Shown: one piece after another, positions 1 through 63,317 of the stretch
How the letters are laid out: each line of letters opens with the position of its first letter
How positions within the stretch are numbered: the stretch's first letter is position 1
Source of the DNA: Macrostomum lignano
Lineage: Eukaryota
Direction: 5' to 3'
NCBI GenBank assembly: GCA_002269645.1
Contig: NIVC01001581.1
Coordinates: forward strand, 62,001 to 126,000
DNA: 64,000 nt
Notes under the pieces: generated by a model
Database searches by the model: none
Told to the model about the DNA's origin: nothing
What the model saw: the letters and a program-made list of their open reading frames with translations, nothing else
Made by a program: the position numbers and the translations under genes

Positions 1-1674
1 GGTACTTACGCTGGCAATGACGCTATTGTGGCATTCGCTAGATTGCATAAGCTCAACATAGTTATTCATCAGCTGGCCTCGCCGCCCTGGCAGATTGGCG
101 GTAGCGGCGCCTCCGGCACTAGCGACAACGCTACAGATAGCGTTGTCATGCCAACCCAGCCTAGTAACAAGCAGTTACACCTGGCCTATCACAATGGCGA
201 GCATTATTCTAGTATCAGGCGACTAGGTGATAGGTCAGCTACGCCGGCTAATGTGTCAATCAAATTTGATCAGCAAACTGCTTCAATTTCTGGCAACAAT
301 AAGTCGGCTTTATCAGCGGCCGCCGCTGTTGCCGCTAGCACTTCGTCGATGCCTGAACCGTCCGCGGCCGAGCTTAACACGCTTGTGTCCGAGGTTGTCA
401 ATCGTACAGGTTGCAACGATGTCGATCTGATTGCTGAATCGCTGCGGGAGTTGCAATTCGACCTTGATGAGACGGCGGCCTACGTCTTTCAGGTGAGGAC
501 ACACTGACAGATGCTGAGACACACTGACAGATTCTGAGACACACTGATAGATGCTGAGACACACTGACAGATGCTGAGACACACTGACAGATGCTGAGAC
601 ACACTGACAGATGCTGAGACACACTGACAGATGCTGAGACACACTGACAGATGCTGAGACACACTGACAGATGCTGAGACACACTGACAGATGCTGAGAC
701 ACACTGACAGATGCTGAGACACACTGACAGATGCTGAGACACACTGACAGATTCTGAGACACACTGATAGATGCTGAGACACACTGACAGATGCTGAGAC
801 ACACTGACAGATGCTGAGACACACTGACAGATGCTGAGACACACTGATAGATGCTGAGACACACTGACAGATGCTGAGACACACTGACAGATGCTGAGAC
901 ACACTGACAGATGCTGAGACACACTGACAGATGCTGAGACACACTGACAGATGCTGAGACACACTGACAGATGCTGAGACACACTGACAGATTCTGAGAC
1001 ACACTGACAGATGCTGAGACACACTGACATATTCTGAGACACACTGACAGATGCTGAGACACACTGACAGATGCTGAGACACTGACAGATGCTGAGACAC
1101 ACTGACAGATGCTGAGACACTGACAGATGCTGAGACACACTGACAGATGCTGAGACACACTGACGCAGATGCTGAGACGGATTTTAAAACATACTGAGAC
1201 ATACAATAGAAAGACAGGAAGACACACTAAAATGGACACAAAGTCCTACATTAACATGACATACTAAGGCGTATGCTAAGACACATAAGACTTATGACAC
1301 AGACTTCACTAAGACAGCTACCGAGACACAGACAAACACTAAGATAGACAGTTAATTAATTAATAAAATAAGAATGAAATAAAATAAATTTATTTAATCC
1401 GCAGGTGCTCGAATCTGTAGTTAACGACGAAGCGTCAGTTGGCGCCAATCCGTCCACCCTTGTATTGGAGCAGCAACTGGAGCAACATCAGCTCCAGCAG
1501 CATCGGCAGCGTACTAAACCAACTAAGCGCGAAGCGAAACTATTGAAGAAAGAGCGAGCCACTGAGAGGCACAGGCGCATGCAGCTGCAGTCGGGCGATG
1601 ATGCCGACACAGACGAGACTGGCGCCGCTTCCGCCCTGATGATTCAGGCTGGCTCGCCGTTGCTGCAGCTATGA
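1..1674 (+). CDS. OTUD3: OTU deubiquitinase OTUD3-like, 3' part (exons <1-492, 1405-1674)
   Basis: Frame from base 1 reads GTYAGNDAIVAFARLHKLNIVIHQL...LHLAYHNGEHYSSIRR, matching the OTUD3 OTU C-terminus with the catalytic His loop. It is followed by a UBA-like segment (VVNRTGCNDVDLIAESL) and a basic C-terminal tail. Phase-0 intron CAG|GTGAGG (493) to GCAG|GTG (1404). Confidence 0.9.
497..1190. repeat. 20-bp minisatellite (ACACTGACAGATGCTGAGAC)n in the OTUD3 intron
   Basis: Direct inspection; starts a few nt after the donor; explains ORFs 313-1239, 398-1138 and 489-1202. Confidence 0.97.
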
Positions 1675-10781: not shown

Positions 10782-13700
10782 ATGTCATTATCAGCATCAT
10801 CAAGCCAATCTTCATCGCCCTATACCGGCCACTTTGCCGAGAACTTTTTCTGGGGCAACACTCTTGGCGAGGGTGGCAACTCCATAGTGAAACTGGTTTA
10901 TAATCCTCAAACTGAGCAGCGAATGGCTTGCAAAATATTCGACTCAAAAGACTCCATGTCTGGTCCGGGTTTCGAAACTCAACGACAAGATCGACTACGC
11001 CAGGTGCGTAAAGAGTACATGATGCTCAAATTGGTGGAGTCCAGTCCGCACGAGAATGTGTGCAAATTTCTGGGCGTCAGACAGGCTGGCGACACGTATT
11101 TCATGTTCTTCGAGTTGCTCACGGGCGGAGAGCTGTTCAATCACATCGTACCGGATGTTGGCATTCCGGCCAGTCTGGCCAAGATGTACTTTGTGCAAAT
11201 TTGCCGGGCAATCGCTCACCTGCAGACTCTGGGCATTGCGCATCGGGATATTAAATGCGAGAATTGTTTGCTGACTGGCGATTTGCGGACTTTGAAGGTC
11301 ACTGATTTCGGTTGGGCTACAATCTATAGGAGTCAGGTGAGTGTCTGGAGTGAGCATTCTTAAGAATTGCCTGTCACCCTTAGCAATCGCCCACAATCCC
11401 ATAAAGAGAATCGCCCACAATCCCATAAAGAGAATCGCCCACAATCCCATAAAGAGAATCGCCCACAATCCCATACAGAGAATCGCCCACAATCCCATAA
11501 AGAGAATCGCCCACAATCCCATAAAGAGAATCGCCCACAATCCCATACAGAGAATCGTCCACAATCTCATAGAGAATCACCCACAATCTCATAGAGAATC
11601 GCCCACAATTCCATAGAGATAATCGCCCACAATCTCATAGAGAGAATCGCCCACAATCTCAGAGAAAATCGCCCACAACCCCACAATCCCACAATCCCAT
11701 AGAGAGAATCGCCCACAATCCCATAGAGAAAATCGTCCACAATCCCATAAAGAGAATCGCCCACAATATCAGAGAATCGCCTAAAATCTCATAGAGAGAA
11801 TCGCCCACAATCTCATAGAGAGAATCTCTCATAATCTCATAGAGATAATCGCCCACAATCTCTGAGAAAATCGCCCACAACCCCATGGAGAGAATCGTTC
11901 ACAATCCCATAAAGAGAATCGCCCACAATATCAGAGAGAATCTCTCAAAATCTCATAGAAGAGAATCCCCCACAATCCAATAGAGAGAATCGCCCAAAAC
12001 ATCAGAGAATAGCCACTCCCCTACTCCGCACCATTCCCCATCTCTTGCCCACTATAGCAGGGCGCAGTCAGAACCCTGGTCGGCGTGGCCGGCACCGAGC
12101 CGTACATGTGCCCGGAGATGCACGTGACCGACAGGCCCTACAGAGCTGAGCCAGTGGACTATTGGTCAGCCGGGGTAGTCCTAATCGCTATGCTCACTGG
12201 CGAAATGCCCTGGGATCGGGCGCATTCCTCGGAGCCGCATTTTGTCGCCTGGGTTCAGGGCAACAACAATCAAATGCCGTTCGATCGACTGACCGCCGAG
12301 CAATTGACCTTCCTGCGTAAGCTGCTGTGCCTCAGGCCTAGTAAACGGCTGTATGGCGACAGCGTCTTGCAGCATCCGTGGATTCGATCCCGCGACCTGC
12401 CCGAGCCAACTAGGGCCAGAGGTGTGACGCCGCAAATTAGTAGCTCACAGGTGAGCTGCCTACAGGGTTTGATATGGGGCAATGTACTTTTATCGGACTT
12501 ACAGTACATAAGACTAGATTGCAAGAAAACTTGAAAACCCATATCCAGTGCGTGTGCATAGCGAGCGAGAGGGAAAATGGGTGTCCCCAGCCAGGCCGAT
12601 AAACAGTTTAGCTTTCCTGTTGCCCGCTCGTGTGTGACTTCGACTTCTCTCCTTCCTGCTCTCTCATTGGCTGAGCTAGATTGGGCCTGCCCCTAGGCTA
12701 TGTTTCGTCCGTCTGACTTTGACCTCTCTCCTTCCTGCTCTCTCATTGGCTTAGCCAGATTAGGCCTGCCCCCTAGACTGACTTGAGTTTCGTCCATTTT
12801 GCGTTCATTTGCGTACATCAATTTTATTGCTTGTTTATTCTTAGCCCCATATGCCAACCCCGAGGAAGGAAAAGAAATTTTATCTGCTACATTAAATTTA
12901 AATGACACTGCGCAGACAAACTACTGATAAAAAAATCTGACATTCTAGTATTTTGTGGATCTTAGGTACTTCAAAATTCAGAGGGTAATTAAATAAGGTA
13001 TGCACTTTGTAGAATAATACAATACATTGTGCATAGTACTTTTAGGGTAAGTACTGTACGGAATTGTCAATCGTTTATGCACAAGCAAAACAGTGCTGTA
13101 ATTTAATTTCACCGCCACCTTTTACCCTCCCCACCCTCCAGGCCGCTCCCGTATCCTTAAACCTGGATGGCGATTCGAACTCGGGCCCGCCGGCCCTGCT
13201 CAGCCCTGGCGTATTTGTCGCCCCGATTGAATCGGCCGAAGACGAAGCGGCCGTAGCAGCCGCCGCTGCCGCGGCCAAGAATCCGCCCCAGATGACTGGC
13301 GGCTTCACCCAACCAGCCCGGTTAGCAGCCATCCCCCTCGGCACCGCCACTCAGGCCGCCGCGGCCGCTGCTGCAGCCGCTCCGATTACCGCCTCGCAAT
13401 TGGACTCAGCCGAGATGCAGCCAATCGGGTTGCACAGAATGGCGCTAAGATTGACTCGATTCTTTACTAGCACTGATGCGGCCGCTACACAGGAGGAACT
13501 GTTAAAGGCATTGGGCATGGTGTCCGAGCTCCGGGTCACCCAGCAGGATCGAGGAGCTATTCACGTGAGTGGGTGTTCTTTGATTGATTATGAGCATCCT
13601 TATGACTGATTATGAGCAACCCTATGATTGATTAGGAGCAACCCGATGATTGATTATGAGCAACCCTATGATTGATTATGAGCATCCCTATGATTAATTT

Positions 13701-48460: not shown

Positions 48461-49757
48461 ATGTACAGCGATTCAACTGTCACACCTCGGACTCAGAGGC
48501 GACAAGAGATTTGCCAGCGTAGGTTGGACTACTTGGCTAGAAATGGCGAGCGGCTACTTAGTAGCAATGGGTAAGTTGTTAACTAATTGTAAAAAAAGTA
48601 AACAAACCTAAAAATATTGCAAAGCCTTTACACAATGACTTTAATATTGGTAATTTTCCAGTCACCTCAGCAGCCACAGGATTGACAGCTCGAAAGGTAC
48701 AAACCTAAGCTCGCCGCGTGCGAAAGCAAATACGTTTAAAGCAGCGGCAGCGCCAACAGCAACAACAACAAATAAAGAGAGGCAAGTCAGAAACAGTCAG
48801 ACAGCTGCCTCAAGCAACAAAGTCAGGCAGCACTCAGCAGAAGCAACTGCACAAAGGCCCTGCATCAGTGCCCCTTTCAACTTGGGAGCAGCGCAACATT
48901 CTGATGAGGACGCCGCAATCGAGTCCGAATTTCATACTCATCGACCGGGGCCAGAGTTCGATCCAGCTTACGATGATGAAGCTACTAGAGAGGCTGGAAT
49001 GGCCACATCTCGCAGCACCGAGCTGCTATTGGAGACACAACGCAACCATCTGCAGGATATTGTGCAGCAGTCTAGAAGATCTGCTGCTGCCGCTGCGAGT
49101 CTGTTGCAGGAAAAGCAGAACTCTAAGAGGTTTGAGCACCTGGATTCTGCCCTAAATAATTCTGACTACAGATTAGCAATCCATTCTGTTCCTTCATCCA
49201 GCAGATATGGCTATAGATTAGCAATCCATTCTGTTCCTTCACCCAGCAGATATGGCTATAGATTAGCAATCCATTCTGTTCCTTCACCCAGCAGATATGG
49301 CTATAGATTAGCAATCCATTCTGTTCCTTCACCCAGCAGATATGGCTATAGATTAGCAATCCATTCTGTTCCTTCATCCAGCAGATATGGCTATAGATTA
49401 GCAATCCATTCTGTTCCTTCACCCAGCAGATATGGCTATAGATTAGCAATCCATTCTGTTCCTTCACCCAGCAGATATGGCTATAGATTAGCAATCCATT
49501 CTGTTCCTTCACCCAGCAGATATGGCTATAGATTAGCAATCCATTCCATCTGTTCCAGACCGCATTCAAGAAGCCAGAGCTACCAGCATCAGCAGCCGCA
49601 GCGCCCGACACAGCAGCGAGCTGCTGCTGACGACACAGACGAGTTTCTGCGCGAGCTTGAAGCTCGCCACAAGATGCGCCAATCGAGACGACTGCCAGAT
49701 TATGACGCCATTCTGCGCCAACTCGACAGCGAGTTGGACAGCGTCGGAGTCGATGTG

Positions 49758-49809
<52 letters not shown>

Positions 49810-52800
49810 CGGTGCGGGTGGCACGAGACCAGCGTCCACGTCGCGCCCCTGGACACCCCGCCAATGTGGCAGGAGCTCCGTGCGTCCCTGCCATCGACGG
49901 GGTGACGAATTGGTCTCACCTCCGGGTATGCAGCCTGGGAGAGCTGTCCCCCAACGTTGGGTTGGCGGTGGATGGCGGTTTTTACAGCGTAAGTCGGTCT
50001 GCGGAGGAGCCCTGCGCACCGGGACTCGGGTCCCCACGCTCTCTGGCCACCCGCCGCAGGCCGCAAATTGGATTCCGCCGTCTACTGCCCGCCCGCGCAG
50101 GGTCAGCGCCCCGGCTGCATGGGGCTACGCCCCCGGTCCTATTAGCTACGTCTAGCTACAATGTCCGTGACCCGAAAAAGAAAGAAAGAAAGCAGGCGGT
50201 GCACAGCAGCGAGAAGCACTTGGTTCAAAGACAGCAATTCCAACAAAAAAATCAGAAGCAGAGGTCTGCTAGCTTTCGGTTGGCAATCTCTTCAAATATT
50301 GTTATAGATAAAATTCACTGTTTTCTAGTCTCCTTGGATTCTCCCCTTCATCCAGTTCGAATTCTCCACTTGGGATTTCCTAGCTCTAGAGTTCACCCAG
50401 TTTGGATTCTCCATTTGGTATTCCCCCAGCTCTGGAATTCCCCCAGTTTGGATTCTTGTAATGGCTATAGTAAGAAGGCCGGAGTTTGCTGAGACGAAAG
50501 GTGGAGCCCTGCTAGGTGGGCTGATCGATGCTTATTTATTTTCAGACTATGGAATAAAATCACGCCACCAGAGTGGGGGTGAAGAATCGCCGCACTTGAA
50601 GTGCATGAATTGTACGCAAGGCCGATGTACATATAAATTGGGCTCGCGTGAGCACTACATCTCTCCACGCGCGGATTATTAACAGGGGAATAAAAAACAA
50701 AATATTGTGACTAAAAAGTACATTGTCAAGGTCTGCTGCTGCAAAGCAATCACTGAGACTCAATGTCTCCTGAGGTCCGGCTCCTTGTAGTTCTTGGCCT
50801 CGTCTTTGGCCTGGCGCGGGTGCGGCCTGGCCGCGATCGGATCGGCGGGCTCGTCGGGCGCCTCTTGGCCGCCGGTCTCGCCGATGGACTCGGCCTGCTG
50901 CGTGGCCGGGGGCTCCGGCAGCTTCTTGACCTGAGTGGCGTGCCGTCGGCAAGTGGTCTCGCCACGCTGAATGACCAGGGCATCTCCATGAACCTCGGCC
51001 ACAGTCCACGGTACGGTTTCAAAGAAGGTGTCCGTTTTTTGTCGGTGCTGCTGGCGCCGTAGGACGCGGTCACCTGGTTGGATTTGATGGTCAGCGGCTC
51101 GTTCTCGCTGGTCGCGGTAGTCCTTCATCTTCTCCTTGGCCTTCGAATCCGCTCCGGCAATGGCGGCTCGCGTCGCTTTCACAGGTCGCGAGTGGTGAAG
51201 ACTGGGGATTGTGTCATTGACTTGGCGTCCGAAGAGCAGGTTTGCCGGGGCGACTCCTGTCGAGCTGTGCGGCGTGCGCCGGTACGCGGCCAGGTATTCG
51301 TCGACAGCTGCCGTCCAGTCTTTGCCTTCGGCGACAGCTGCGCGTATGGCTTTGTTGAGGCCCTTGTTGCAGCGCTCGGTGGCTCCGTTAGCCTGCGGGT
51401 AGAGCGGCGTGATCCGATGATGGTGGACTCCTTGGCCTTTCAGGAAGCAGCTGGTGAAATCCGATGATGAGAAAGGCGGCCCGTTGTCGGTTGACACCTT
51501 GAGCGGCTGGCCGAAGATGCTAAACCACCGTCTGAGCACGCGTATGGCGGCGGCGGCCGTTGTGTCTGCCATAACTTCAACCAGCGGAAATCGAGAAAAG
51601 TGATCGGTGCAGACGAGTAACGACTTTCCTTTGACGGGCCCCAGGAAGTCAAGGCCGAGATCGAGCCACGGCCCATCCGGCAGATCCGTCGGCTTCAAGG
51701 GCGTTGCCTTCGTAGTCGCCTCGCTGTTGCAGGCCGCGCAGCTGATGCAGGTGGCCACATGAGTCTCCACTGCCGAGCGCATGCCGGGCCACCAGACCTT
51801 TGACTGCAGGCGGTCCAGTGTCTTCCGCATGCCTTGGTGTCCTAGATGGGCCAGTTGAAGGCACCGGAACCGCAGCACTGCAGGCACGAACAGCTGGCTG
51901 CCGCGCAATAGGAGGCCGTCGTGTTCCGACAGCTCGTGCCTGACGCCTCGGATGTCCTTCAGATCCGCGTCCTTGGAGTCCCAGCTGCCGGTGCGAATGG
52001 CGCGGCGGGCAGCCTGCACTGTCGGGTCCTGCTCCGAAGCTGCCTTGATCGCTGATATGCTGAGAGACACCGGAGTCGCCGCCTGGACGACCATGGCAAC
52101 GAACGCTGCGTCGGCCCGCTCGCCTCCGTTGTTTGGCGGCAGCGGTAGCGGTTGCCGGCTGAGCACGTCGGACGGGTTTCCGGCTCCGGGCTGGTAAATG
52201 ACGCTGAAGGCAAGGTCCTGCAGTCGGAGAGCCATGCGTTCAATTCTGGGCGGCGGCCGAGACCCTGGGCTGAACATCGAGACGAGCGGTCTGTGGTCAG
52301 TTATGACTTTAAAGTGCTCACAGCCGCTGAGAAAATGATGAAATTTTAGACAGCCATACTTTACTGCGAGTGCCTCGCGCTCGGTCTGGGAGTACCGCTG
52401 CTCGGTGGCGCTGAGGCTGCGGCTCGCGTAGGCCACCGGTCGAATCGAACCATCAGGCTGCACTTGGGCTAGGATGGCGCCGGCTCCGGTTGGACTGGCA
52501 TCGACGATCAGCTGGGACTGCAGGTCTTTGCTGAAGAATGCCAGCGCCTGGCTACTGGCTATCGTGCGCTTGATGTCGATGAAAGCTGCTTCTTGATGGT
52601 CGCCCCACGCCCACTCTGCCCCGTGCTTTGTCAGATCTCGGAGCGGCCGTGCCCTGTCGGACAGGTTGCTAATGAAGCGAGCGACAAAGGTGACGAGGCC
52701 GAGGAAGGACCTGACCTCGGTAGCGTTGGTCGGTCTTTTGAAGCAGTTAATGGCCGCCACCTTCTCTGTGCTGGGATGGATTCCGGCTGCGGTGAGGCGC

Positions 52801-55800
52801 ATGGCCAGGAAGTCGACTTCTTGCTGCGCGAACCTGCACTTCGCCGGGTTGAGGGTGATATTGTGGTCTCGCAACCGCTGCAGACAGTCGCGCAGTCGCT
52901 GGTTGTGCTCTTCGATACACTTGGCGTAGATGAGGATGTCGTCGTGTACCCAGCGCACGCCGGGGAGTCCGCTCAGAACAGTTGTCATCACGCGCTGCAG
53001 GATTTCAGAGGCTGACGTGTAGCCCATGCAGAGGCGCCTCAGTCGCATAAGGCCTAGTGGCGTTGAGAAGGTCAGGAGCTCCCTCGAATCTTCGGCCACC
53101 TCGATTTGATGAAAGGCCTTGGCGACATCTAACTCTGAGAAACATGTTGATCCGGCCATCTCGTCCGTAACCTCCTCAAATGTGGGAATCGGTTGCTTCT
53201 CGGGAATCACGAATTTGTTGACCTCGCGGAGATCCTGGGTGATGCGGATTCGTCCCTTGTCGTCCTTTGGAACAGCCACCATTCTTGAGCACCATGCTGT
53301 AGGTCCGTGGACACGCTCGATGATGCCCTGAGCAAGCTGCTCTTCCAGCTCTTTTCTGACGGCGTCTCTGAGGTGCACTGGCACGCGTGACGGTGCTTGG
53401 CATGTTGGCGTGGCTTCGGGACGCAGCTTGATGGTAACGCGGACGCCTTTGACGCAGCCGATGCCGTGAAACCTATCCTCGAATTCGGTCAGGACGCTTT
53501 GCAGCTGCGGGTTGTCGGTCGGGTGCTGGTCGTTGATGCTTCGTGACCCGGTGAGACCTGCCACTAATACGGGTTGCTTGTTGGCTCCTGGGCCGACCTG
53601 TAGCATGCCGAGCTCGGTGCTGGTCTGTCTTCCGATGATGGGGGTGCAGCTGCTTTTTATGATGATGAAGTTCGGCTGCAGCTTGTGCCCGTTTGCCGCC
53701 ACGATCAGCCTGGCCTGTCCCTCAACGGCCAGCGGTTGGCTTGCGCCAAGTGGGAAAACCCTTGTGCTGCAGGGCTCGATCCTGGTGCCCGGGTTGCTGA
53801 TCCGCCTGAAGGTGCACAGGTCGAGCACGTTGCAGCTCGCTCCGCTGTCGATGAGCGCCCTGACTGCGTGGCCGTTGATGCTGATGACGAATTTTGCGCT
53901 CCCGTTCTTGTCTTCCAGTGTGCAGAACACTTCCTCGCATGACTGGTCGGTCGGCTCGTCCGAGTCGTGGCCAAGTGCGTTGATGCGCGAACGGCTACTG
54001 AGACAAGCCTTAGCGAGGTGGTTCATCTTGCCACAGCTATCGCACTTCTTGCCCTGAGCCTTGTTGCAGCTTCGGTGTCCAGACTCTCCGCAGCGGATGC
54101 ATTTGCTGTTAGTCTTTGGCGGCTCGCGGGCTGACCCACCTGGCTGGCGGCGGCGCAGCATGTTGACGTCTTCGGAGGTGGCAGCGCTTTTCGACATGAT
54201 GGCAGCTTGCTTTTCGGCCGCCTCATGAGTTCTTGCCAGCTGTAGAGTGTCTGCGAGACTGATGTTTGGCACGTTTAAGAGTCGCTTCCTGAGGGCATCG
54301 CTGCGGCAACAGGCCACGATTTGATCTCGGATCAGTGACTGCTGCAGGTCTCCAAACTGGCACGCTTCTGATGCGCTCCACAGTCTGCTGTACCATGAGT
54401 CGATCTGTTCTCCATCCTCTTGAAGGCAATTCCGGAATTGGTATCGGATGAAGACGACATTGTCGCGGCCTTTAAACTGTTTGTTGAAAGTCTCGATAAG
54501 TGTTGAAATGTTTGCACTTTGGCCTTCTGCGATTGTTTCGCTGTTAGCAATCTCTTTGTACATGTCGCTGATTTCCTTTCCGGCCGTGTAGAGCAGAATT
54601 TCCCGCTTTTGGGCCTCATTGGTGATGCCACTGGCCGCCAGGTAGCGGTGTAGGTTGTCAGCCCATTCTTGCCAGCGTTTGCTGACAGTGTGTGGGTCTT
54701 CTCTAATGCTGAATGATGCGGGGGCGGCAGTTGCAAGGCCATGGCTCGCTCTTGCGACGCCAATGTAATGGCTATAGTAAGAAGGCCGGAGTTTGCTGAG
54801 ACGAAAGGTGGAGCCCTGCTAGGTGGGCTGATCGATGCTTATTTATTTTCAGACTATGGAATAAAATCACGCCACCAGAGTGGGGGTGAGGAATCGCCGC
54901 ACTTGAAGTGCATGAATTGTACGCAAGGCCGATGTACATATAAATTGGGCTCGCGTGAGCACTACAATTCTCTACTTGGGATTTCCCCAGCTCTAGTATT
55001 CACCCAGTTTGGATTCTCCATTTGGTATTTTTCCAGCTCTGGAATTCCCCCAGTTTATATTCTCTACTTGGGATTTCCCCAGCTTTAAGATTCACCCAGT
55101 TAGAATTCTCCACTTGGGATTTCCCCAGCTCTAGAATTCACCCAGTTTGGATTCTTCACTTGGGATTCCTCCGAAGTGTAGGTTTAACCCTCCTGGGATT
55201 CTCTTTTTAGGATTCCCCAGCTTGGGGTTGACGTAGCCGGGATTCTCTATATGGGATTTCTCACCCTCGGGATTCCCACTTTGAATTTTTTAAATCAAAT
55301 TGGACTCCCCTCAAAATTTAGTTTTAAGACTTAATTTTCCAATTGAGTCACGTGACTGCCAATCCCGATCGCAGATCTCCACAGTCGCAGCATCAGCCGG
55401 AGGTCGATTATCACAAACACCTGAACGCCGTTAAGCGGCATCACGAAGATCTTCAGCGTCGGGTAGCTGAGGAGTGGACTGAGCAGCGACTGCGCGAGAG
55501 CAACTCGCGAGCCTCGCTGGAGAGGTACTTCGCCAGCCTGAGGGAGATCAGCCCGCGCTCGGAGGTTCGCGTTCAATTAATAATTTGTGGTTTATTCTAA
55601 TTGCTCCTAGATTAATGAGTTTGGGATATTAAGATTATTCAGCCCAAATATTTAGGAATATTCGGTATATTATTATGAATTTATACTTATGAATATGAGT
55701 TTGAAATAATTTAAGGACAAAGTTGGGATTTGGGATAATAAAGGGCAAAGTGGGGATTTGGGATAATAAAGGCCAAAGTGGGAATTTGGGATATTAAAGG

Positions 55801-56641
55801 TCAAAGTGTGGGAATCGGGATATTAAAGGTCAAAGTGGGGATTTGGGATATTAAAGGTCAAAGTGTGGAAATTGGGATATTAAAGGTCAAAGTGGGGATT
55901 TGGGATATTAAAGGTCAAAGTGTGGGAATCGGGATATTAAAGGCCAAAGTGGGGATTTGGGGATATTAAAGGCCAAAGTGTGGGAATCGGGATATTAAAG
56001 GCCAAAGTGGGGATTTAAGATATTAAAGGCCAAAGTGGGAATTTGGGATATTAAAGATCTAAGTGGGAATTTGGGATATTAAAGGTCAAAGTGGGAATTT
56101 GGGATATTAAAGGTCAAAGTGGGAATTTGGGATATTAAAGGTCAAAGTGGGGGAATTTGGGATATTAAAGGTCAAAGTGGGAATTTGGGATATTAAAGGT
56201 CAAAGTGGGGACAAAACTCGAACACTTCCGGTTGCTATACCGCTAACGCAGGCCTCGGAGATTGCTCAACAGTTTGAACCGGTGCCAGACTATGCAGCAG
56301 GTGACGGCACCAAAGGCGCACCAGAGCTGATCCGCTGTCCAGAATGCGGCGAGGCGACCGACGCTCGCGACAACCTGACCTGGTGCCCAAACTGCGGTCG
56401 CTGCCTGACTGTCGTTGTCAACGACGCCACCAACGACAAAGACTGGGCGACTGTTGCGTCGAATTCGTCCAGGTCGGAATCGGGGGCTTCTTCGACGGTG
56501 ACTTCGCTGCCAGCCGGCCTGTCATTTGCTGATGGTCTGGACGCCAGTCAGCACCGGGAGATGCAGCGGCGCCGATGGCAGAAGGAGCTTCTGTCTCCGG
56601 ATCTGCTGCAGGAATTGCGCTTGGATTTGCCGCCCGAGTGA
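48461..56641 (+). CDS. Uncharacterised protein with polyQ, coiled-coil-like segments and a C-terminal CxxC...CxxC zinc ribbon (exons 48461-48570, 48662-49129, 49559-50263, 55348-55564, 56252-56641)
   Basis: ATG 48461 (MYSDSTVTPRTQRRQEIC...); consecutive GT-AG junctions keep frame (phases 2,2,2,0); last exon has RCPECGEATDARDNLTWCPNCG. One acceptor is an unusual GAG (55347). Exon 3 contains a retroposon insertion. Confidence 0.65.
49165..49546. repeat. 45-bp minisatellite, locus 3, inside the 429-bp intron 49130-49558
   Basis: Same unit as locus 2; intron AG|GTTTGA...TTCCAG|A. Confidence 0.93.
49816..49917 (+). ncRNA. HDV-like self-cleaving ribozyme fold
   Basis: P1 GGGTGGC/GCCCCT; P2 GAGACCA/TGGTCTC; P3 GCG/CGC with L3 TCCACGT; P1.1 CC/GG; P4 CACCCCG/CGGGGTG plus TGGCAGG/CCTGCCA; J4/2 ACGAAT with candidate catalytic C at 49906. 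G1 is the first base after the TSD. Confidence 0.82.
49816..50190 (+). mobile_element. 375-bp non-autonomous non-LTR retroposon (SIDE/SINE-like) with 5' HDV-like ribozyme and GAAA-repeat tail
   Basis: 12-bp TSD AGCAGGCGGTGC at 49804-49815 and 50191-50202; 3' tail GAAAAAGAAAGAAAGAA; GC-rich body with no transposase or RT. Confidence 0.88.
50457..54966 (-). mobile_element. Full-length Ty3/Gypsy LTR retrotransposon, antisense in an intron
   Basis: 203-bp TG..CA LTRs at 50457-50659 and 54764-54966 with 1 visible mismatch; 5-bp TSD ATTCT; candidate PBS TGGCGTCGC next to the 5' LTR; short purine tract GGAGAGA before the 3' LTR; domain order PR-RT-RH-IN. Confidence 0.97.
50760..54742 (-). CDS. Gag-Pol polyprotein of the Gypsy element
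   Basis: Gag with two CCHC-like knuckles, protease LIDSGAS, RT (WVHDDILI), RNase H DAS, integrase HHCC and D,D-E (TDNGP, ANGATER). The ATG at 54742 is one base out of frame with the Gag body. Confidence 0.93.
55725..56210. repeat. ~28-30-bp minisatellite in the last intron of the unknown gene
   Basis: GGGATATTAAAGGTCAAAGTGGGAATTT units. Confidence 0.92.
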
Positions 56642-56744: not shown

Positions 56745-58328
56745 TTGATGATTTTACTAGTGAGTTGTGACACTTCCGGTTGATGATTTTACTAGTGAGT
56801 TGTGACACTTCCGGTTGATGATTTTACTAGTGAGTTGTGACACTTCCGGTTGATGATTTTACTAGTGAGTTGTGACACTTCCGGTTGATGATTTTACTAG
56901 TGAGTTGTGACACTTCCGGTTGATGATTTTACTAGTGAGTTGTGACACTTCCGGTTGATGATTTTACTAGTGAGTTGTGACACTTCCGGTTGATGATTTT
57001 ACTAGTGAGTTGTGACACTTCCGGTTGATGATTTTACTAGTGAGTTGTGACACTTCCGGTTGATGATTTTACTAGTGAGTTGTGACACTTCCGGTTGATG
57101 ATTTTACTAGTGAGTTGTGACACTTCCGGTTGATGATTTTACTAGTGAGTTGTGACGCTTCCGGTTGATGATTTTACTAGTGAGTTGTGACACTTCCGGT
57201 TGATGATTTTACTAGTGAGTTGTGACGCTTCCGGTTGATGATTTTACTAGTGAGTTGTGACACTTCCGGTTGATGATTTTACTAGTGAGTTGTGACGCTT
57301 CCGGTTGATGATTTTACTAGTGAGTTGTGACACTTCCGGTTGATGATTTTACTAGTGAGTTGTGACACTTCCGGTTGATGATTTTACTAGTAAGTTGTGA
57401 CACTTCCGGTTGATGATTTTACTAGTGAGTTGTGACACCTCCGGTTGATGATTTTACTAGTGAGAATTGTGACACTTCCGGTTGATGATTTTACTAGTGA
57501 GTTGTGACACTTCCGGTTGATGATTTTACTAGTGAGAATTGTGACACTTCCGGTTGATGATTTTACTAGTGAGTTGTGACACTTCCGGTTGATGATTTTA
57601 CTAGTGAGTTGTGACACCTCCGGTTGATGATTTTACTAGTGCGTTGTGACACCTCCGGTTGATGATTTTACTAGTGAGTTGTGACACTTCCGGTTGATGA
57701 TTTTACTAGTGAGTTGTGACACCTCCGGTTGATGATTTTACTAGTGAGAATTGTGACACTTCCGGTTGATGATTTTACTAGTGAGTTGTGACACTTCCGG
57801 TTGATGATTTTACTAGTGAGAATTGTGACACTTCCGGTTGATGATTTTACTAGTGAGTTGTGACACTTCCGGTTGATAACTTTACTAGTGAGTTGTGACA
57901 CTTCCGGTTGATGATTTTACTAGTGAGTTGTGACACCTCCGGTTGATGATTTTACTAGTGAGTTGTGACACTTCCGGTTGATGATTTTACTAGTGAGTTG
58001 TGACACTTCCGGTTGATGATTTTACTAGTGAGTTGTGACACTTCCGGTTGATGATTTTACTAGTGAGTTGTGACACTTCCCGTTGATCAGCAAGTTGTGA
58101 CTCTCCGGTTGATGATGTTACTAGTGTGTTGTGAAGCTTCCGGTTGATGATTTTACTAGTGAGTTGTTAGTTTTGGCACTTCCGGTTGATGCTTTTACTA
58201 GTGAGTTGTTAGTTGTGGCACTTCCGGTTGATGCTTTTACTAGTGAGTTGTTAGTTGTGGCACTTCCGGTTGATGCTTTTACTAGTGAGTTGTTAGTTGT
58301 GGCACTTCCGGTTGATGCTTTTACTAGT
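56745..58328. repeat. 35-bp minisatellite (about 45 copies) between convergent genes
   Basis: (GTGACACTTCCGGTTGATGATTTTACTAGTGAGTT)n. Confidence 0.97.
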
Positions 58329-59678: not shown

Positions 59679-62600
59679 GATGAAGCTGAATTTGAAGCAG
59701 AGTTGAGCCACATTCCGCAGGAGAGAAGCTGATGGGGGAGCACCTGTTGATGAGGTGCATGGTTTGTAGGGGAAGAAATTAAATATTAGATAGGTAGGAA
59801 AGGATCTCGCTGAGCCCCATGGGTCCATGATCTATAGCTAGATCATCAATTGATCTATAGCTAGATCATCAATTGATCTATAGCTAGATCATCAATTGAT
59901 CTATAGCTAGATCATCAATTGATCTATAGCTAGATCATCAATTGATCTATAGCTAGATCATCAATTGATCTATAGCTAGATCATCAATTGATCTATAGCT
60001 AGATCATCAATTGATCTATAGCTAGTTTACGAGCTATCAAGCTGTCTACAAACAAGGTATGTATAGCTTTAAAGACCCAGTATCTCTGGCTTTAAGGAAC
60101 CGAGATACCGGATCATTGAAAGGATTCAATGATCCGGTATCTCGCACTTCGACGACCCCGGTATCTCACACTTTGAAGACCTGGTATTATCTACTTTAAA
60201 GAACCGGTATCTCACACTTTAAAGACCCGGTATCTTCTAATTTAAAGACTCTCGCACTTCAGAGACCCGGTATCTCGCACTTCGAAGACCCGGGATCTCA
60301 CACTTCAGTGACCCGGTATCTAACACTTCAGAGACCCGGTATCTAAAACTTCAAAGACCCGGTATCTAACACTTAAAAGAACCGTTATCTCACAATTCAA
60401 AGACCCGGTATCTTGTACTTCAAAAGACCCGGGATCTCACACTTCAGTGACCCGGTATCTAACACTTCAGAGACCCGGTATCTAAAACTTCAAAGACCCG
60501 GTATCTCACACTTTTAAGACCCGGTATGTCACACTTTAAAGACCTGGTATCTCACATTTAAAAGAACCGGTATCTTGTACTTTAAAGACCCGGTATCTCA
60601 CACTTCAGAGACCCGGTATCTCACACTTCAGAGACCCAGTATCTCACACTTCAGAGACCCGAGAGATATGCCAAGCTACAACAGGCCTGACCTGGCTGAC
60701 AGGTGTCCCCGATGCTGCTGCAGCTCCGCACCGGAGTTCGCACAGGGGTCAGTCAGCAGGCAGTCCACTGAGCGGCCAAAAGTTCCAGCCATTCGCGGCA
60801 GATTTCCGCCAATAACACCCGCGGGATGCACCGCGGCAGCGGCATCGCCGTGCTGACCCTCCGGGGTTGCGTCGTCAAAGGATCGGTACGGATGGAACGC
60901 TTCGGGTTCGTGATTGTACAGCAGGGCATAGCCGCGACCCTGCTCGGGATTGGGCTCGAGCACGGCGATGCACTGACTGCGGGGGACGTAGACAACGCAG
61001 CTGGGCGACCGGAGGCCGTCCTGCGAGTCAATGATGGTCCAGATCCTGCCGCTGGGCAGCACGATTCCGACGGTGTCGTGCAGCGTCACCAGGATGTTGC
61101 CGTCGTGATCGCAGCCGATGCCGATTGGAGGCGGATCCAAAGCTTCGGCGGTCAGCAGGCGAAAGTCTTTGTAGCTGTACACGTGCAGCGGCGCGCCCCC
61201 GAAGGTGAACACCTGCGACAGGGCGAGGTGGGTGGTGATTGAAGTTTCAAGGTACCCTGCAGTCATTGAAGCATTGTATTAAACCAGGGGGTCGGCAGAC
61301 TTCGGCCCGTGGGCCACCCGCGGCCATCGGAGCCTCTCTATCCGGCCCTCGGGTCATCTGAAAGTTCACAATAGCAATCCGGCCCGCTCAATGTTTGCGT
61401 TTTTTCTCAGCTCTTTCCCTTTTCTCCTCTCTCCCCTCTCCTCTCTCTCCTCTCCTCTCTCTCCTCTCCTCTCTCCCCTCTCCTCTCTCCCCTCTCATCT
61501 CTCCCCTCTCATCTCTCCCCTCTCCTCTCTCCCCTCTCCTCTCTCCCCTCTCCTCTCTCTCCTCTCCTCTCTCTCCTCTCCTCTCTCTCCTCTTCTCTCT
61601 CTCCTCTCCTCTCTCTCCTCTCCTCTCTCTCCTCTCCTCTCCTCTTTCTCCTCTCTCCCCTCTCCTCTCTCCTTTCTCCTCTCTCCCCTCTCCTCTCTCC
61701 CTTCTCCTCTCTCCCCTCTCCTCTCTCCCTTCTCCTCTCTCCCCTCTCCTCTCCTCTCTCTCCTCTCCTCTCTCTCCTCTCCTCTCTCTCCTCTCCTCTC
61801 TCCCCTCTTCTCTCTCCTCTCCTCTCTCTCCTCTCCTCTCTCTCCTCTCTCCCCTCTCCTCTCTCCTTTCTCCCCTCTCCTCTCTCCCCTCTCCTCTCTC
61901 CCCTCTCCTCTCTCCCCTCTCCTCTCTCCCCTCTCCTCTCTCCCCTCTCCTCTCTGCCCTCTCCTCTCTCCCCTCTCCTCTCTCCCCTCTCATCTTTCCC
62001 TTCTGGCTTTGAGTAAAGGATGCCTGAACTTTGCAAGCAGTCCACCTTGACGCTGTAGTTGCCCCTGTCAGTCACCAGAATCCGTCTGTCCAGCGTCACC
62101 GCCAGACCCTCCGGTCGGTTCAAGTCGCCCGGCCCGGAGCCCAGCTGGCCGATCCGGTTTCTGAGGGCACCGCTGGGCCACAGGATGAAGACGCAGTGCT
62201 GCCCAGCATCCGCAATCAGGTAATAATCGTTTTGAGTAGCCGCAACGCCTCGAGGTTCGCGAAATAGGCTGACGGACTGGTTGATCAGCCTCAGGAACTC
62301 GCCGTTCTCGCTGCTGAACAGCTTGAGCTGAGCATGGATGGTGTCCACCACAGCCACGCTGCCGTCGCTGATCACGGCGACTCCCGAGGGTGCGTTCAAG
62401 TTCCAGTCGGAGTCGCCCGGTTCGCCGAAAGCGAGTCGAACGTCGCCGACCGGAGTGACGATAAGGACTCGGTGACTGCCGGCGTCTGAGATCACCAGGT
62501 CGCCTGGATGGAGTGGTTGAGGTTCTCAGCAGCGCTACTAGGGAGTTTCTGAGTTCTGAGTCTGAGCTTTATCAGTGAAAATGCGACATCGTCCCACACA

Positions 62601-63317
62601 ACCAGCGCTGCCTCCTGAGCACAGACAAGTGAGCCAATACTGTACACAGACACGCACTCACACACACGCTCACAAAGGGTGTACAGCGGACCTTCGACTT
62701 TCTAATCGGTCAGGGATGTACACTGTCTGTGCCTTGGGGGTTGGCCCTCATGGCTGAGAATCGTACTGACAACTCACCTGGCCAATTTTCGTGCGCCAGC
62801 ACCAGAGGCGCCAGCACCAGAGGCGCCAGCACCAGAGGCGCCAGCACCAGAGGCGCCAGCACCAGAGGCGCCAGCACCAGAGGCGCCAGCACCAGAGGCG
62901 CCAGCACCAGAGGCGCCAGCACCAGAGGCGCCAGCACCAGAGGCGCCAGCACCAGAGGCGCCAGCACCAGAGGCGCCAGCACCAGAGGCGCCAGCACCAG
63001 AGGCGCCAGCACCAGAGGCGCCAGCACCAGAGGCGCCAGCTGCAGCTACAGCTGCTGCAGACGTATCGGCGCCACATCAACTCACCAGTCTGTGTTGCTG
63101 CCAAACCAGCCGCGACCCGAACTGCGTGCCTCCCGGTCGGCGCCAAGCGGCACCTCAGCTTGTCGCTCTGCACGCATGGCAACGGCTCGCCGACAAGAAT
63201 ATGCCCGAAGCCAGGCCGGGTTTTGCCGCTGAACGCCACGGTAAAATTGTTGATCAACCTGCGCATGGTCTCCATGCCCTGGGTCAGTATGGTTTGTTGG
63301 TGTATCGCCAGTTTCAC
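59329..63317 (-). CDS. NHL-repeat beta-propeller protein (TRIM-NHL-like C-terminus) with polyQ tail (exons ~63317-63086, 62503-62046, 61212-60692, 59743-59329; 5' end uncertain)
   Basis: NHL repeats GDLVISDAGSHRV, LNAPSGVAV, FREPRGVAA, LNRPEGLAVTLDRRILVTDRGNYSVKVF. Junction phases 1,0,2 are consistent. No RING or B-box is seen in the window. Confidence 0.85.
59828..60025. repeat. 23-bp self-complementary minisatellite
   Basis: (TGATCTATAGCTAGATCATCAAT)n. Confidence 0.96.
60070..60665. repeat. Degenerate ~23-bp repeat (AGACCCGGTATCTCACACTTCAG)
   Basis: Direct inspection; lies in an NHL-gene intron. Confidence 0.88.
61410..62000. repeat. CT-rich low-complexity tract in an NHL-gene intron
   Basis: (CTCTC/CTCC)n. 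Confidence 0.95.
62580..62752. mobile_element. Dispersed hairpin-containing repeat, copy 3
   Basis: ACATCGTCCCACA... GTGTACAGCGGACCTTCGACTTTCTAATCGGTCAGGGATGTACAC...GTGCCTTGGGGGTTGGC. Confidence 0.6.
62793..63040. repeat. 15-bp perfect repeat (GCGCCAGCACCAGAG)n in an NHL-gene intron
   Basis: Direct inspection. Confidence 0.97.

Follow-up and report, generated by a model that had tools for sequence, protein, structure and literature searches.

A short retroposon with a 5′ HDV-like ribozyme candidate inserted in frame beside a CAG run in a coding exon of Macrostomum lignano

The flatworm Macrostomum lignano (assembly GCA_002269645.1) carries a 375-bp insert, 65% G+C, in the third of five coding exons of a gene on contig NIVC01001581.1, within a 64,000-nucleotide stretch (positions 62,001 to 126,000 of the forward strand) that we refer to as the window and whose own numbering is used throughout. 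We consider the insert probably a short, non-autonomous retroposon of the class without long terminal repeats (non-LTR), resembling the elements known as SIDEs (short internally deleted elements) and composed of a 5′ ribozyme resembling that of hepatitis delta virus (HDV), a structured 3′ domain and an A-rich tail (Table 1). It lies in sense with the host gene, begins 7 nt past a CAG run that encodes polyglutamine (polyQ), and leaves the host reading frame open. Hallmarks of insertion by target-primed reverse transcription are present, namely a target-site duplication, an A-rich, simple-repeat tail and a precise empty site. The strongest argument for the ribozyme is one of position: the predicted cleavage site, 5′ of G49816, is the exact boundary set independently by the target-site duplication, and the putative fold thus starts at base 1 of the insert. 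Non-LTR elements headed by an HDV-like ribozyme are familiar, as are non-autonomous derivatives that join such a ribozyme to a 3′ end. The present locus offers a clean natural case in which an apparently intact HDV-like ribozyme sits in sense in a coding exon, while the same genome holds an empty paralogue for comparison.

Insertion site and empty counterpart

The insert is flanked by a perfect 12-nt direct repeat, AGCAGGCGGTGC, whose two copies are spaced 387 nt apart; by our own arithmetic about 0.01 such 12-nt repeats are expected by chance in 601 nt. The first 1–2 nt of the 5′ copy are ambiguous with the element tail; the duplication is 10–12 bp long. The empty counterpart lies on NIVC01000073.1 of the same assembly, at the locus (L001) of the M. 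lignano protein P0001, which is collinear with the window over approximately 26 kb at 98% identity in coding sequence and approximately 90–96% identity in non-coding sequence. Here the site reads GTGAAG(CAG)6GCGGTGCACAGCAGCG, in which the 12-mer occurs once and the insert is missing, and P0001 runs uninterrupted across it (...VKQQQQQQAVHSSEKH...). By this comparison L001 provides the exact empty site, at a locus that is paralogous (or allelic but very divergent), and, because the insert is lacking from this syntenic position, the insertion postdates the divergence of the two loci. The CAG run itself differs in length, with 16 units in the insert-bearing copy (a tandem-repeat span of 49759–49808, 16.7 units) and 6 in the empty paralogue (12261–12278 of L001), a difference that may be connected with the insertion or may reflect ordinary microsatellite drift.

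The site falls within a real gene. The spliced product of the window frame matches three M. lignano proteins, P0001, P0002 (UniRef A0A1I8JCZ8) and P0003, at E values of 1e-139 to 1e-145, and these place five exons whose donors and acceptors are all canonical and the same as in the paralogue. The product has 491 residues without the insert and 620 with it, and ends in a C-terminal CxxC...CxxC zinc-ribbon-like motif for which Pfam returns weak zinc-ribbon matches only. Between the two loci the coding sequence shows 28 nucleotide differences in 1443 and a ratio of nonsynonymous to synonymous substitution rates (dN/dS) of 0.34. As judged from these alignments, the host gene shows no other damage and has evolved under constraint, and exon 3 is a genuine coding exon. 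We rejected as the gene a mechanically called open reading frame (ORF) of 536 aa (48882–50492), probably the one on which the original prediction had drawn, since its middle is intron 2. That intron is filled by a 45-bp tandem repeat (49166–49546, 8.5 copies, 98% matches), and because 45 is a multiple of three the spurious frame (YGYRLAIHSVPSPSR repeated) stays open across it. The corresponding array of the paralogue (about 10700–12056 of L001) is approximately threefold longer, and the intron measures 1381 nt there versus 429 nt in the window.

The original prediction, made from the letters of the window, had described a ribozyme retroposon lying in sense, in frame and stop-free in a coding exon. 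The duplication, the matches to P0001–P0003 and the ribozyme fold all agree with that description. The distance of 387 bp between the duplicated sites does equal 129 codons in a host frame without stop, the 16 CAG units next to the insertion are there, the tripeptide QAV is duplicated by the target-site duplication (one 12-mer copy at L001, two in the window), and the comparison with an empty site that had been proposed found one. That a chimeric join or a misplaced read created the insert during assembly is scarcely credible: although the locus was inspected in one assembly, the insert is bounded by a perfect duplication, ends in a tail and has an exact empty counterpart, a separate annotation of the same allele type (P0002) avoids exactly this segment, and another copy of the element is present elsewhere in the form of the protein model P0004, described below.

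Element anatomy and the ribozyme candidate

The insert has no protein-family match in Pfam in its only stop-free frame and contains no ORF of its own such as a reverse transcriptase, and no related sequence occurs elsewhere in the window, where it is single-copy, or in L001. The whole element is predicted to fold more stably than its shuffles (z = −3.9), with a long irregular hairpin downstream of the ribozyme candidate that, by analogy with the R2 and R1 SIDEs, is presumed to be the recognition site for the reverse transcriptase of a partner long interspersed nuclear element (LINE) (PMC3414825).

Over the first 102 nt of the insert, the Rfam model RF00094 (HDV_ribozyme) gives a full-length match (model positions 1–89, window 49814–49918) of 26.8 bits. 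Its E value is 0.087 for 601 nt against 4227 families and approximately 2e-5 for that single family, and the match carries meaning only when this one family is asked about in a targeted search. The nested double pseudoknot is complete, with P1, P2, P3, P1.1 and P4 in canonical order and all 32 of 32 pairs standard; the pseudoknot helices P2 and P1.1, which the Rfam model does not score, are both perfect. L3 aligns to HDV UCCUCGCU with U20, C21, C22 and G25 at their HDV positions, and a G1·U wobble closes P1 (G49816 with U49850). C49906 of J4/2, followed by G-A-A, sits where HDV has its catalytic C75, a position that would give it the corresponding role. Among dinucleotide shuffles of the insert, 7 of 3000 hold any match to a structural descriptor of this fold, and the true match begins at insert base 1. 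The candidate is assigned as HDV-like by its modeled fold and, with a score short of the 50-bit gathering score, is not filed under RF00094 itself.

A six-frame query with the insert finds a second copy in P0004 (UniRef A0A1I8HT69), an M. lignano WD-repeat protein model. Its residues 271–291 (GWHETSVHVAPLDTPPMWQEL) are the translation of 49816–49878, and its residues 297–347 are another frame of 49950–50102, for a total of 77 identical residues (231 nt) with one 1-nt indel in a C5 run. The homology starts exactly at G1, in sense, on a different flank and directly after QQQQQQQPQR. The model crosses the element by way of a 54-nt 'intron' (equivalent to 49880–49933) and exits at a donor, ...CGCAG|GTCAGC; residues 258–347 thus look like a predictor's construct, probably an artefact of annotation that brought transposon sequence into the public protein set. 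Apart from a weak and probably low-complexity match, P0007, the six-frame protein query and a HMMER search of one frame found no further annotated copies. A scan of a metagenome collection with a 20-mer of the ribozyme core returned 27 loci, all of them chance matches of 20–26 nt in unrelated contigs. From the near-identity of the two copies, the element appears to be a repeated family that was very recently active. That this family was designed to be coding-compatible is rejected, as the second copy is read in a stop-containing frame and needs the invented 54-nt intron and the 1-nt indel.

The second copy also bears on P1, where U49819 is bulged. The original prediction called P1 damaged and suggested that this may be what makes the insertion tolerated. 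P0004 encodes the same G-W-H and V-A-P-L-D, codons that fix the lengths of both P1 strands, and its W codon, TGG, keeps the U. The bulge is therefore not private to the window copy and, from the encoded residues, belongs to the family as a whole or to the master copy behind it. In R2 ribozymes, P1 has 6–7 bp and a quarter have mismatches at the top of the stem (PMC3774820).

Several observations weigh against the ribozyme-headed retroposon. The Rfam score lies below the 50-bit gathering score of the family, and a scan of the whole window lists no HDV match at gathering thresholds and none at E ≤ 5. The descriptor is generous and was written after the sequence had been seen; it matches this site and one other in the window, and block-shuffled windows hold 0.72 matches on average. 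The bulged U interrupts P1, and P1 imperfections are uncommon among HDV-like ribozymes and have been tied to loss of cleavage in vitro (PMC3774820). The second copy is known from a protein model and the element DNA from one copy, and no autonomous partner LINE was identified in searches that covered the window and L001. Finally, the published P0002 model of this allele type treats the insert region as an intron.

The first of these points would fit a G+C-rich short interspersed element (SINE) or retrocopy in which an HDV-like fold arose by chance and the 5′ end reflects transcription initiation or 5′ truncation. The sub-threshold score, a descriptor false-positive rate that is non-trivial per 128 kb, and the minimum-free-energy z-score of only −0.6 for the 105-nt segment alone are consistent with this. 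We nevertheless consider it very unlikely, given the single-family E value, the position-by-position agreement of the core nucleotides with HDV, a fold whose start coincides with base 1 of the element in two insertions that are independent, and the at most 0.23% of insert shuffles that match at any position. The other descriptor match in the window (62645–62413, minus strand) was judged a chance match: it is A/T-richer, has no duplication, no tail and no G+C-rich helices, and fits the expected false-positive rate.

At this particular insertion site, the flank together with G1 (GGUGCG, 49811–49816) can pair with CGCGCC (49842–49847), which comprises the 3′ strand of P3 and the start of the 3′ strand of P1. 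This 6-bp alternative helix, identified by eye and specific to the site, could compete with the ribozyme fold.

Table 1 Features of the host gene and the insert in window coordinates
Feature	Position	Strand	Description	Basis
Host gene	48461..56641	+	five exons	mapped from P0001–P0003
Host gene exon 1	48461–48570	+		
Host gene exon 2	48662–49129	+		
Host gene exon 3	49559–50263	+	contains insertion	
Host gene exon 4	55375–55564	+		
Host gene exon 5	56252–56641	+		
(CAG)16 run	49761..49808	+	encodes Q16	paralogue (CAG)6
5′ target-site duplication copy	49804..49815	+	AGCAGGCGGTGC	single copy at L001 empty site
Non-autonomous retroposon	49816..50190	+	375 bp, 65% G+C	absent from L001
HDV-like ribozyme candidate	49816..49917	+	first 102 nt of insert	Rfam match, structure map, descriptor scan
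P1	49816–49822 with 49845–49850	+	GGG(U)GGC / GCCCCU, six pairs, U49819 bulged	
P2	49825–49831 with 49911–49917	+	GAGACCA / UGGUCUC, 7 bp	
P3	49832–49834 with 49842–49844	+	GCG / CGC	
L3	49835–49841	+	UCCACGU	
P1.1	49836–49837 with 49851–49852	+	CC / GG, 2 bp	
P4	49854–49860 with 49898–49904	+	7 bp	
P4 distal helix	49867–49873 with 49887–49893	+	second 7-bp helix	
J4/2	49905–49910	+	ACGAAU	
J4/2 cytosine	49906	+	putative counterpart of HDV C75	Rfam alignment and structure map
Structured 3′ domain	49918..50173	+	predicted long irregular hairpin	fold of whole element
A-rich 3′ tail	50174..50190	+	GAAAAAGAAAGAAAGAA, (GAAA)n-like	read from sequence
3′ target-site duplication copy	50191..50202	+	AGCAGGCGGTGC	direct repeat

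Placement beside CAG runs and fate of the host transcript

Both known insertions (n = 2, one inferred from protein) lie 7–9 nt 3′ of a CAG/polyQ run. The window holds two (CAG/CTG) runs of at least 5 units, and the strand-aware fraction of its positions within 12 nt downstream of such a run is approximately 2e-4; two of two placements are much more than chance would give, even were exons to be strongly enriched for runs, a new lead with n = 2. With about 12 nt duplicated, the first nick, on the bottom strand, would fall within the CTG run or at its end. That the element's 5′ end carried a CAG flank along by transduction is unlikely, because the 7–9-nt spacers differ between the sites and the run is already present at the empty site. 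On this basis, we tentatively propose, as a possibility somewhat short of an even chance, a young family headed by an HDV ribozyme and served by a partner endonuclease that cuts one strand within CAG/CTG repeats or next to them, such that new copies land in sense at the polyQ tracts of expressed genes.

The life cycle of such a family can be pictured from the biology of R2, SIDEs and L1Tc (PMC3414825, PMC3774820, PMC3185411). The element, without a promoter of its own, would be transcribed as part of the host pre-mRNA, and the ribozyme would cut 5′ of G49816 to release an element RNA with a precise 5′-OH end. The reverse transcriptase of a partner LINE would then bind the 3′ domain and copy the RNA into a new nick, probably in or next to CAG/CTG repeats. 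Because a promoter-less element would be co-transcribed with its host, a sense copy in an expressed gene is a potential source copy. If the preference for CAG runs holds genome-wide, this would be a retroposon that seeks polyQ-coding exons, with a bearing on how promoter-less elements gain transcription and on the evolution of polyQ tracts; such placement would supply transcription but expose host mRNAs to self-cleavage or peptide insertions, and where the genome is duplicated, alleles with an exonic ribozyme of this natural origin could persist.

Duplication and insert together add 387 nt to the host frame, which has no stop across them, while the remaining frames of the insert contain 3 and 2 stops in sense and 3, 4 and 3 in antisense. 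At 65% G+C the chance of an open frame is 0.034 for a given frame and 0.108 for any sense frame, and once the one-in-three odds that the length is a multiple of three are included, approximately 1% of random sequences of this composition are expected to be both in frame and stop-free. For this particular element, which has one open sense frame, about 1 in 9 sense exonic insertions (one-third for phase times one-third for length) would keep the host ORF. The in-frame state is not evidence of design, because selection removes exon insertions that break the frame and survivorship leaves those that keep it.

Three fates can be envisaged for a transcript that crosses the insert. Self-cleavage would destroy the host mRNA. 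Read-through would yield the 620-aa protein with 129 extra residues between Q16-AV and QAVHSSEKH, a segment that is rich in R, P, G and A and probably disordered. Splicing around the insert region would be the third, which the original prediction, counting two outcomes, did not list and which the P0002 model adds. These outcomes are directly comparable in a tractable model flatworm. The built-in knockdown or switch suggested in the original prediction would depend on cleavage of the host transcript. Tolerance of the insertion is probably owed to the intact paralogues, redundancy being the most economical explanation: the duplicated genome holds the intact, 98% identical paralogue at L001 (P0001), along with the models P0003 and P0005.

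Splicing around the insert forms the core of a further alternative, in which the region is non-coding in this allele owing to a cryptic donor upstream of the CAG run and an acceptor within exon 4, and the protein lacks approximately 38 residues and carries no foreign peptide. P0002 differs by 1 aa from the spliced product of the window and reads ...SVGVD|SQHQPEV..., skipping VKQn...KQRSPQ, whereas P0003, of the same annotation and the insert-free paralogue type, retains the segment. The P0002 junction leads from GAT|GTGAAG (49753/49754) to an AG 10 nt inside exon 4 (~55385), and thereby omits the polyQ tract, the insert, the remainder of exon 3 and three codons at the start of exon 4. We regard this alternative as unlikely. 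It calls for two unusual sites, a weak donor and an acceptor that is placed 10 nt downstream of the conserved GATCGCAG|A. This pair is precisely the one that preserves the frame, as an ab initio predictor would choose it, and in the window intron 3 retains its conserved donor and acceptor. As such, the P0002 model looks like a predictor's rescue and constitutes weak evidence. Within the retroposon itself lies a perfect 5′ splice-site consensus, AGCG|GTAAGT (49989–49994), followed by AG-ending stretches at about 50048, 50100 and 50196, and cryptic splicing inside the insert is thus conceivable.

An equally tentative reading, again somewhat under even odds, is an ordinary neutral or mildly harmful insertion in a redundant gene copy, with a ribozyme inactivated by the P1 bulge, a frame kept by chance or survivorship, and no regulatory role. 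This would fit the intact paralogue with its 98% identical coding sequence, a second young insertion in the same allele (the LTR retrotransposon of intron 3, below), the 1 in 9 sense exonic insertions that would keep the frame, the different, stop-containing frame in which the second copy is read, so that the family is not generally coding-compatible, and the reported link between P1 imperfections and inactivity (PMC3774820). Against it, the rest of the ribozyme core is flawless, and both copies reach G1 with full-length 5′ ends and hardly differ over 231 nt. This implies recent mobility in which the predicted cleavage site sets the 5′ ends, an outcome that an inactive ribozyme would not easily produce.

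Neighbouring features and comparison with known systems

Intron 3 of the host gene contains an antisense Ty3/gypsy-type LTR retrotransposon (50457–54975) that is absent from L001. It has 212-bp LTRs that are 98% identical, an apparent ATTCT duplication and an uninterrupted 1267-aa ORF (50760–54563, minus strand) with reverse transcriptase, RNase H and integrase domains; together with the retroposon it indicates that the host allele carries two young transposon insertions. It splits a 46-bp tandem array (50347–50456 and 54967–55196) that is continuous in L001. Long tandem arrays are abundant in the window (489–1111, 57000–58300, 61400–63040 and elsewhere), and create overlapping multi-frame ORFs as well as spurious weak matches in Rfam and Pfam, as exemplified by the sR43 matches at 489–1111, most of them spaced by 60 or 120 bp. 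Among the genuine coding signals are a protein kinase domain (10782–11360, plus strand) and an NHL repeat (61512–62495, minus strand), and a LETM1-like gene of the window is syntenic with 2349–8176 of L001.

In the literature we searched, no report from Macrostomum describes HDV-like ribozyme elements or derivatives that join a ribozyme to a 3′ end. Elsewhere, ribozyme cleavage at the 5′ junction is documented for R4, Dong, baggins, L1Tc, RTE and Drosophila R2 (PMC3774820), and SIDEs made of a ribozyme and a 3′ end provide a precedent for the architecture proposed here (PMC3414825). Like the R2 and R2/R1 SIDEs of Drosophila (PMC3414825), the M. lignano element appears to depend on co-transcription with its host, and like them it is non-autonomous, a few hundred bp long and without an ORF, with a 5′ HDV-like ribozyme candidate joined to a 3′ end that, as in the SIDEs, would be recognised by a partner reverse transcriptase. 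The SIDEs, in contrast, sit in ribosomal RNA genes at R2/R1 target sites, whereas the M. lignano element lies in a protein-coding exon transcribed by RNA polymerase II, has a (GAAA)n-like tail and resides in a flatworm. Dong, of the R4 clade in Bombyx mori, shares a ribozyme at the 5′ junction and an adjoining trinucleotide microsatellite; it is specific for (TAA)n, and its HDV-like ribozyme has been shown to cut at the junction of repeat and element (PMC3774820). Dong is autonomous and its TAA repeats are non-coding, whereas the repeat here is coding CAG, the junction falls 7–9 nt past the run and the comparison draws on two insertions.

The L1Tc/NARTc pair of Trypanosoma cruzi likewise uses a 5′ HDV-like ribozyme to free the element from co-transcripts, and NARTc is a truncated, non-autonomous derivative of the LINE L1Tc with which it has the ribozyme in common (PMC3185411, PMC4035085). 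In trypanosomatids, however, the Pr77 region doubles as an internal promoter and transcription is polycistronic, and there is no sequence relation to the M. lignano element. The mammalian CPEB3 ribozyme (PMC10919898) is also HDV-like and lies in sense in a host pre-mRNA, where cleavage competes with the production of mature mRNA; it is intronic, single-copy, conserved and not mobile, whereas the present candidate is exonic and recently inserted, and the CPEB3 model scores only 12.8 bits. In the searched literature, flatworms are represented by the twister-variant elements of Schistosoma mansoni (PMC8501958), non-LTR retrotransposons that also use a self-cleaving ribozyme in their life cycle, with ribozymes that belong to the twister class and to another flatworm lineage, while the M. 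lignano candidate is HDV-like.

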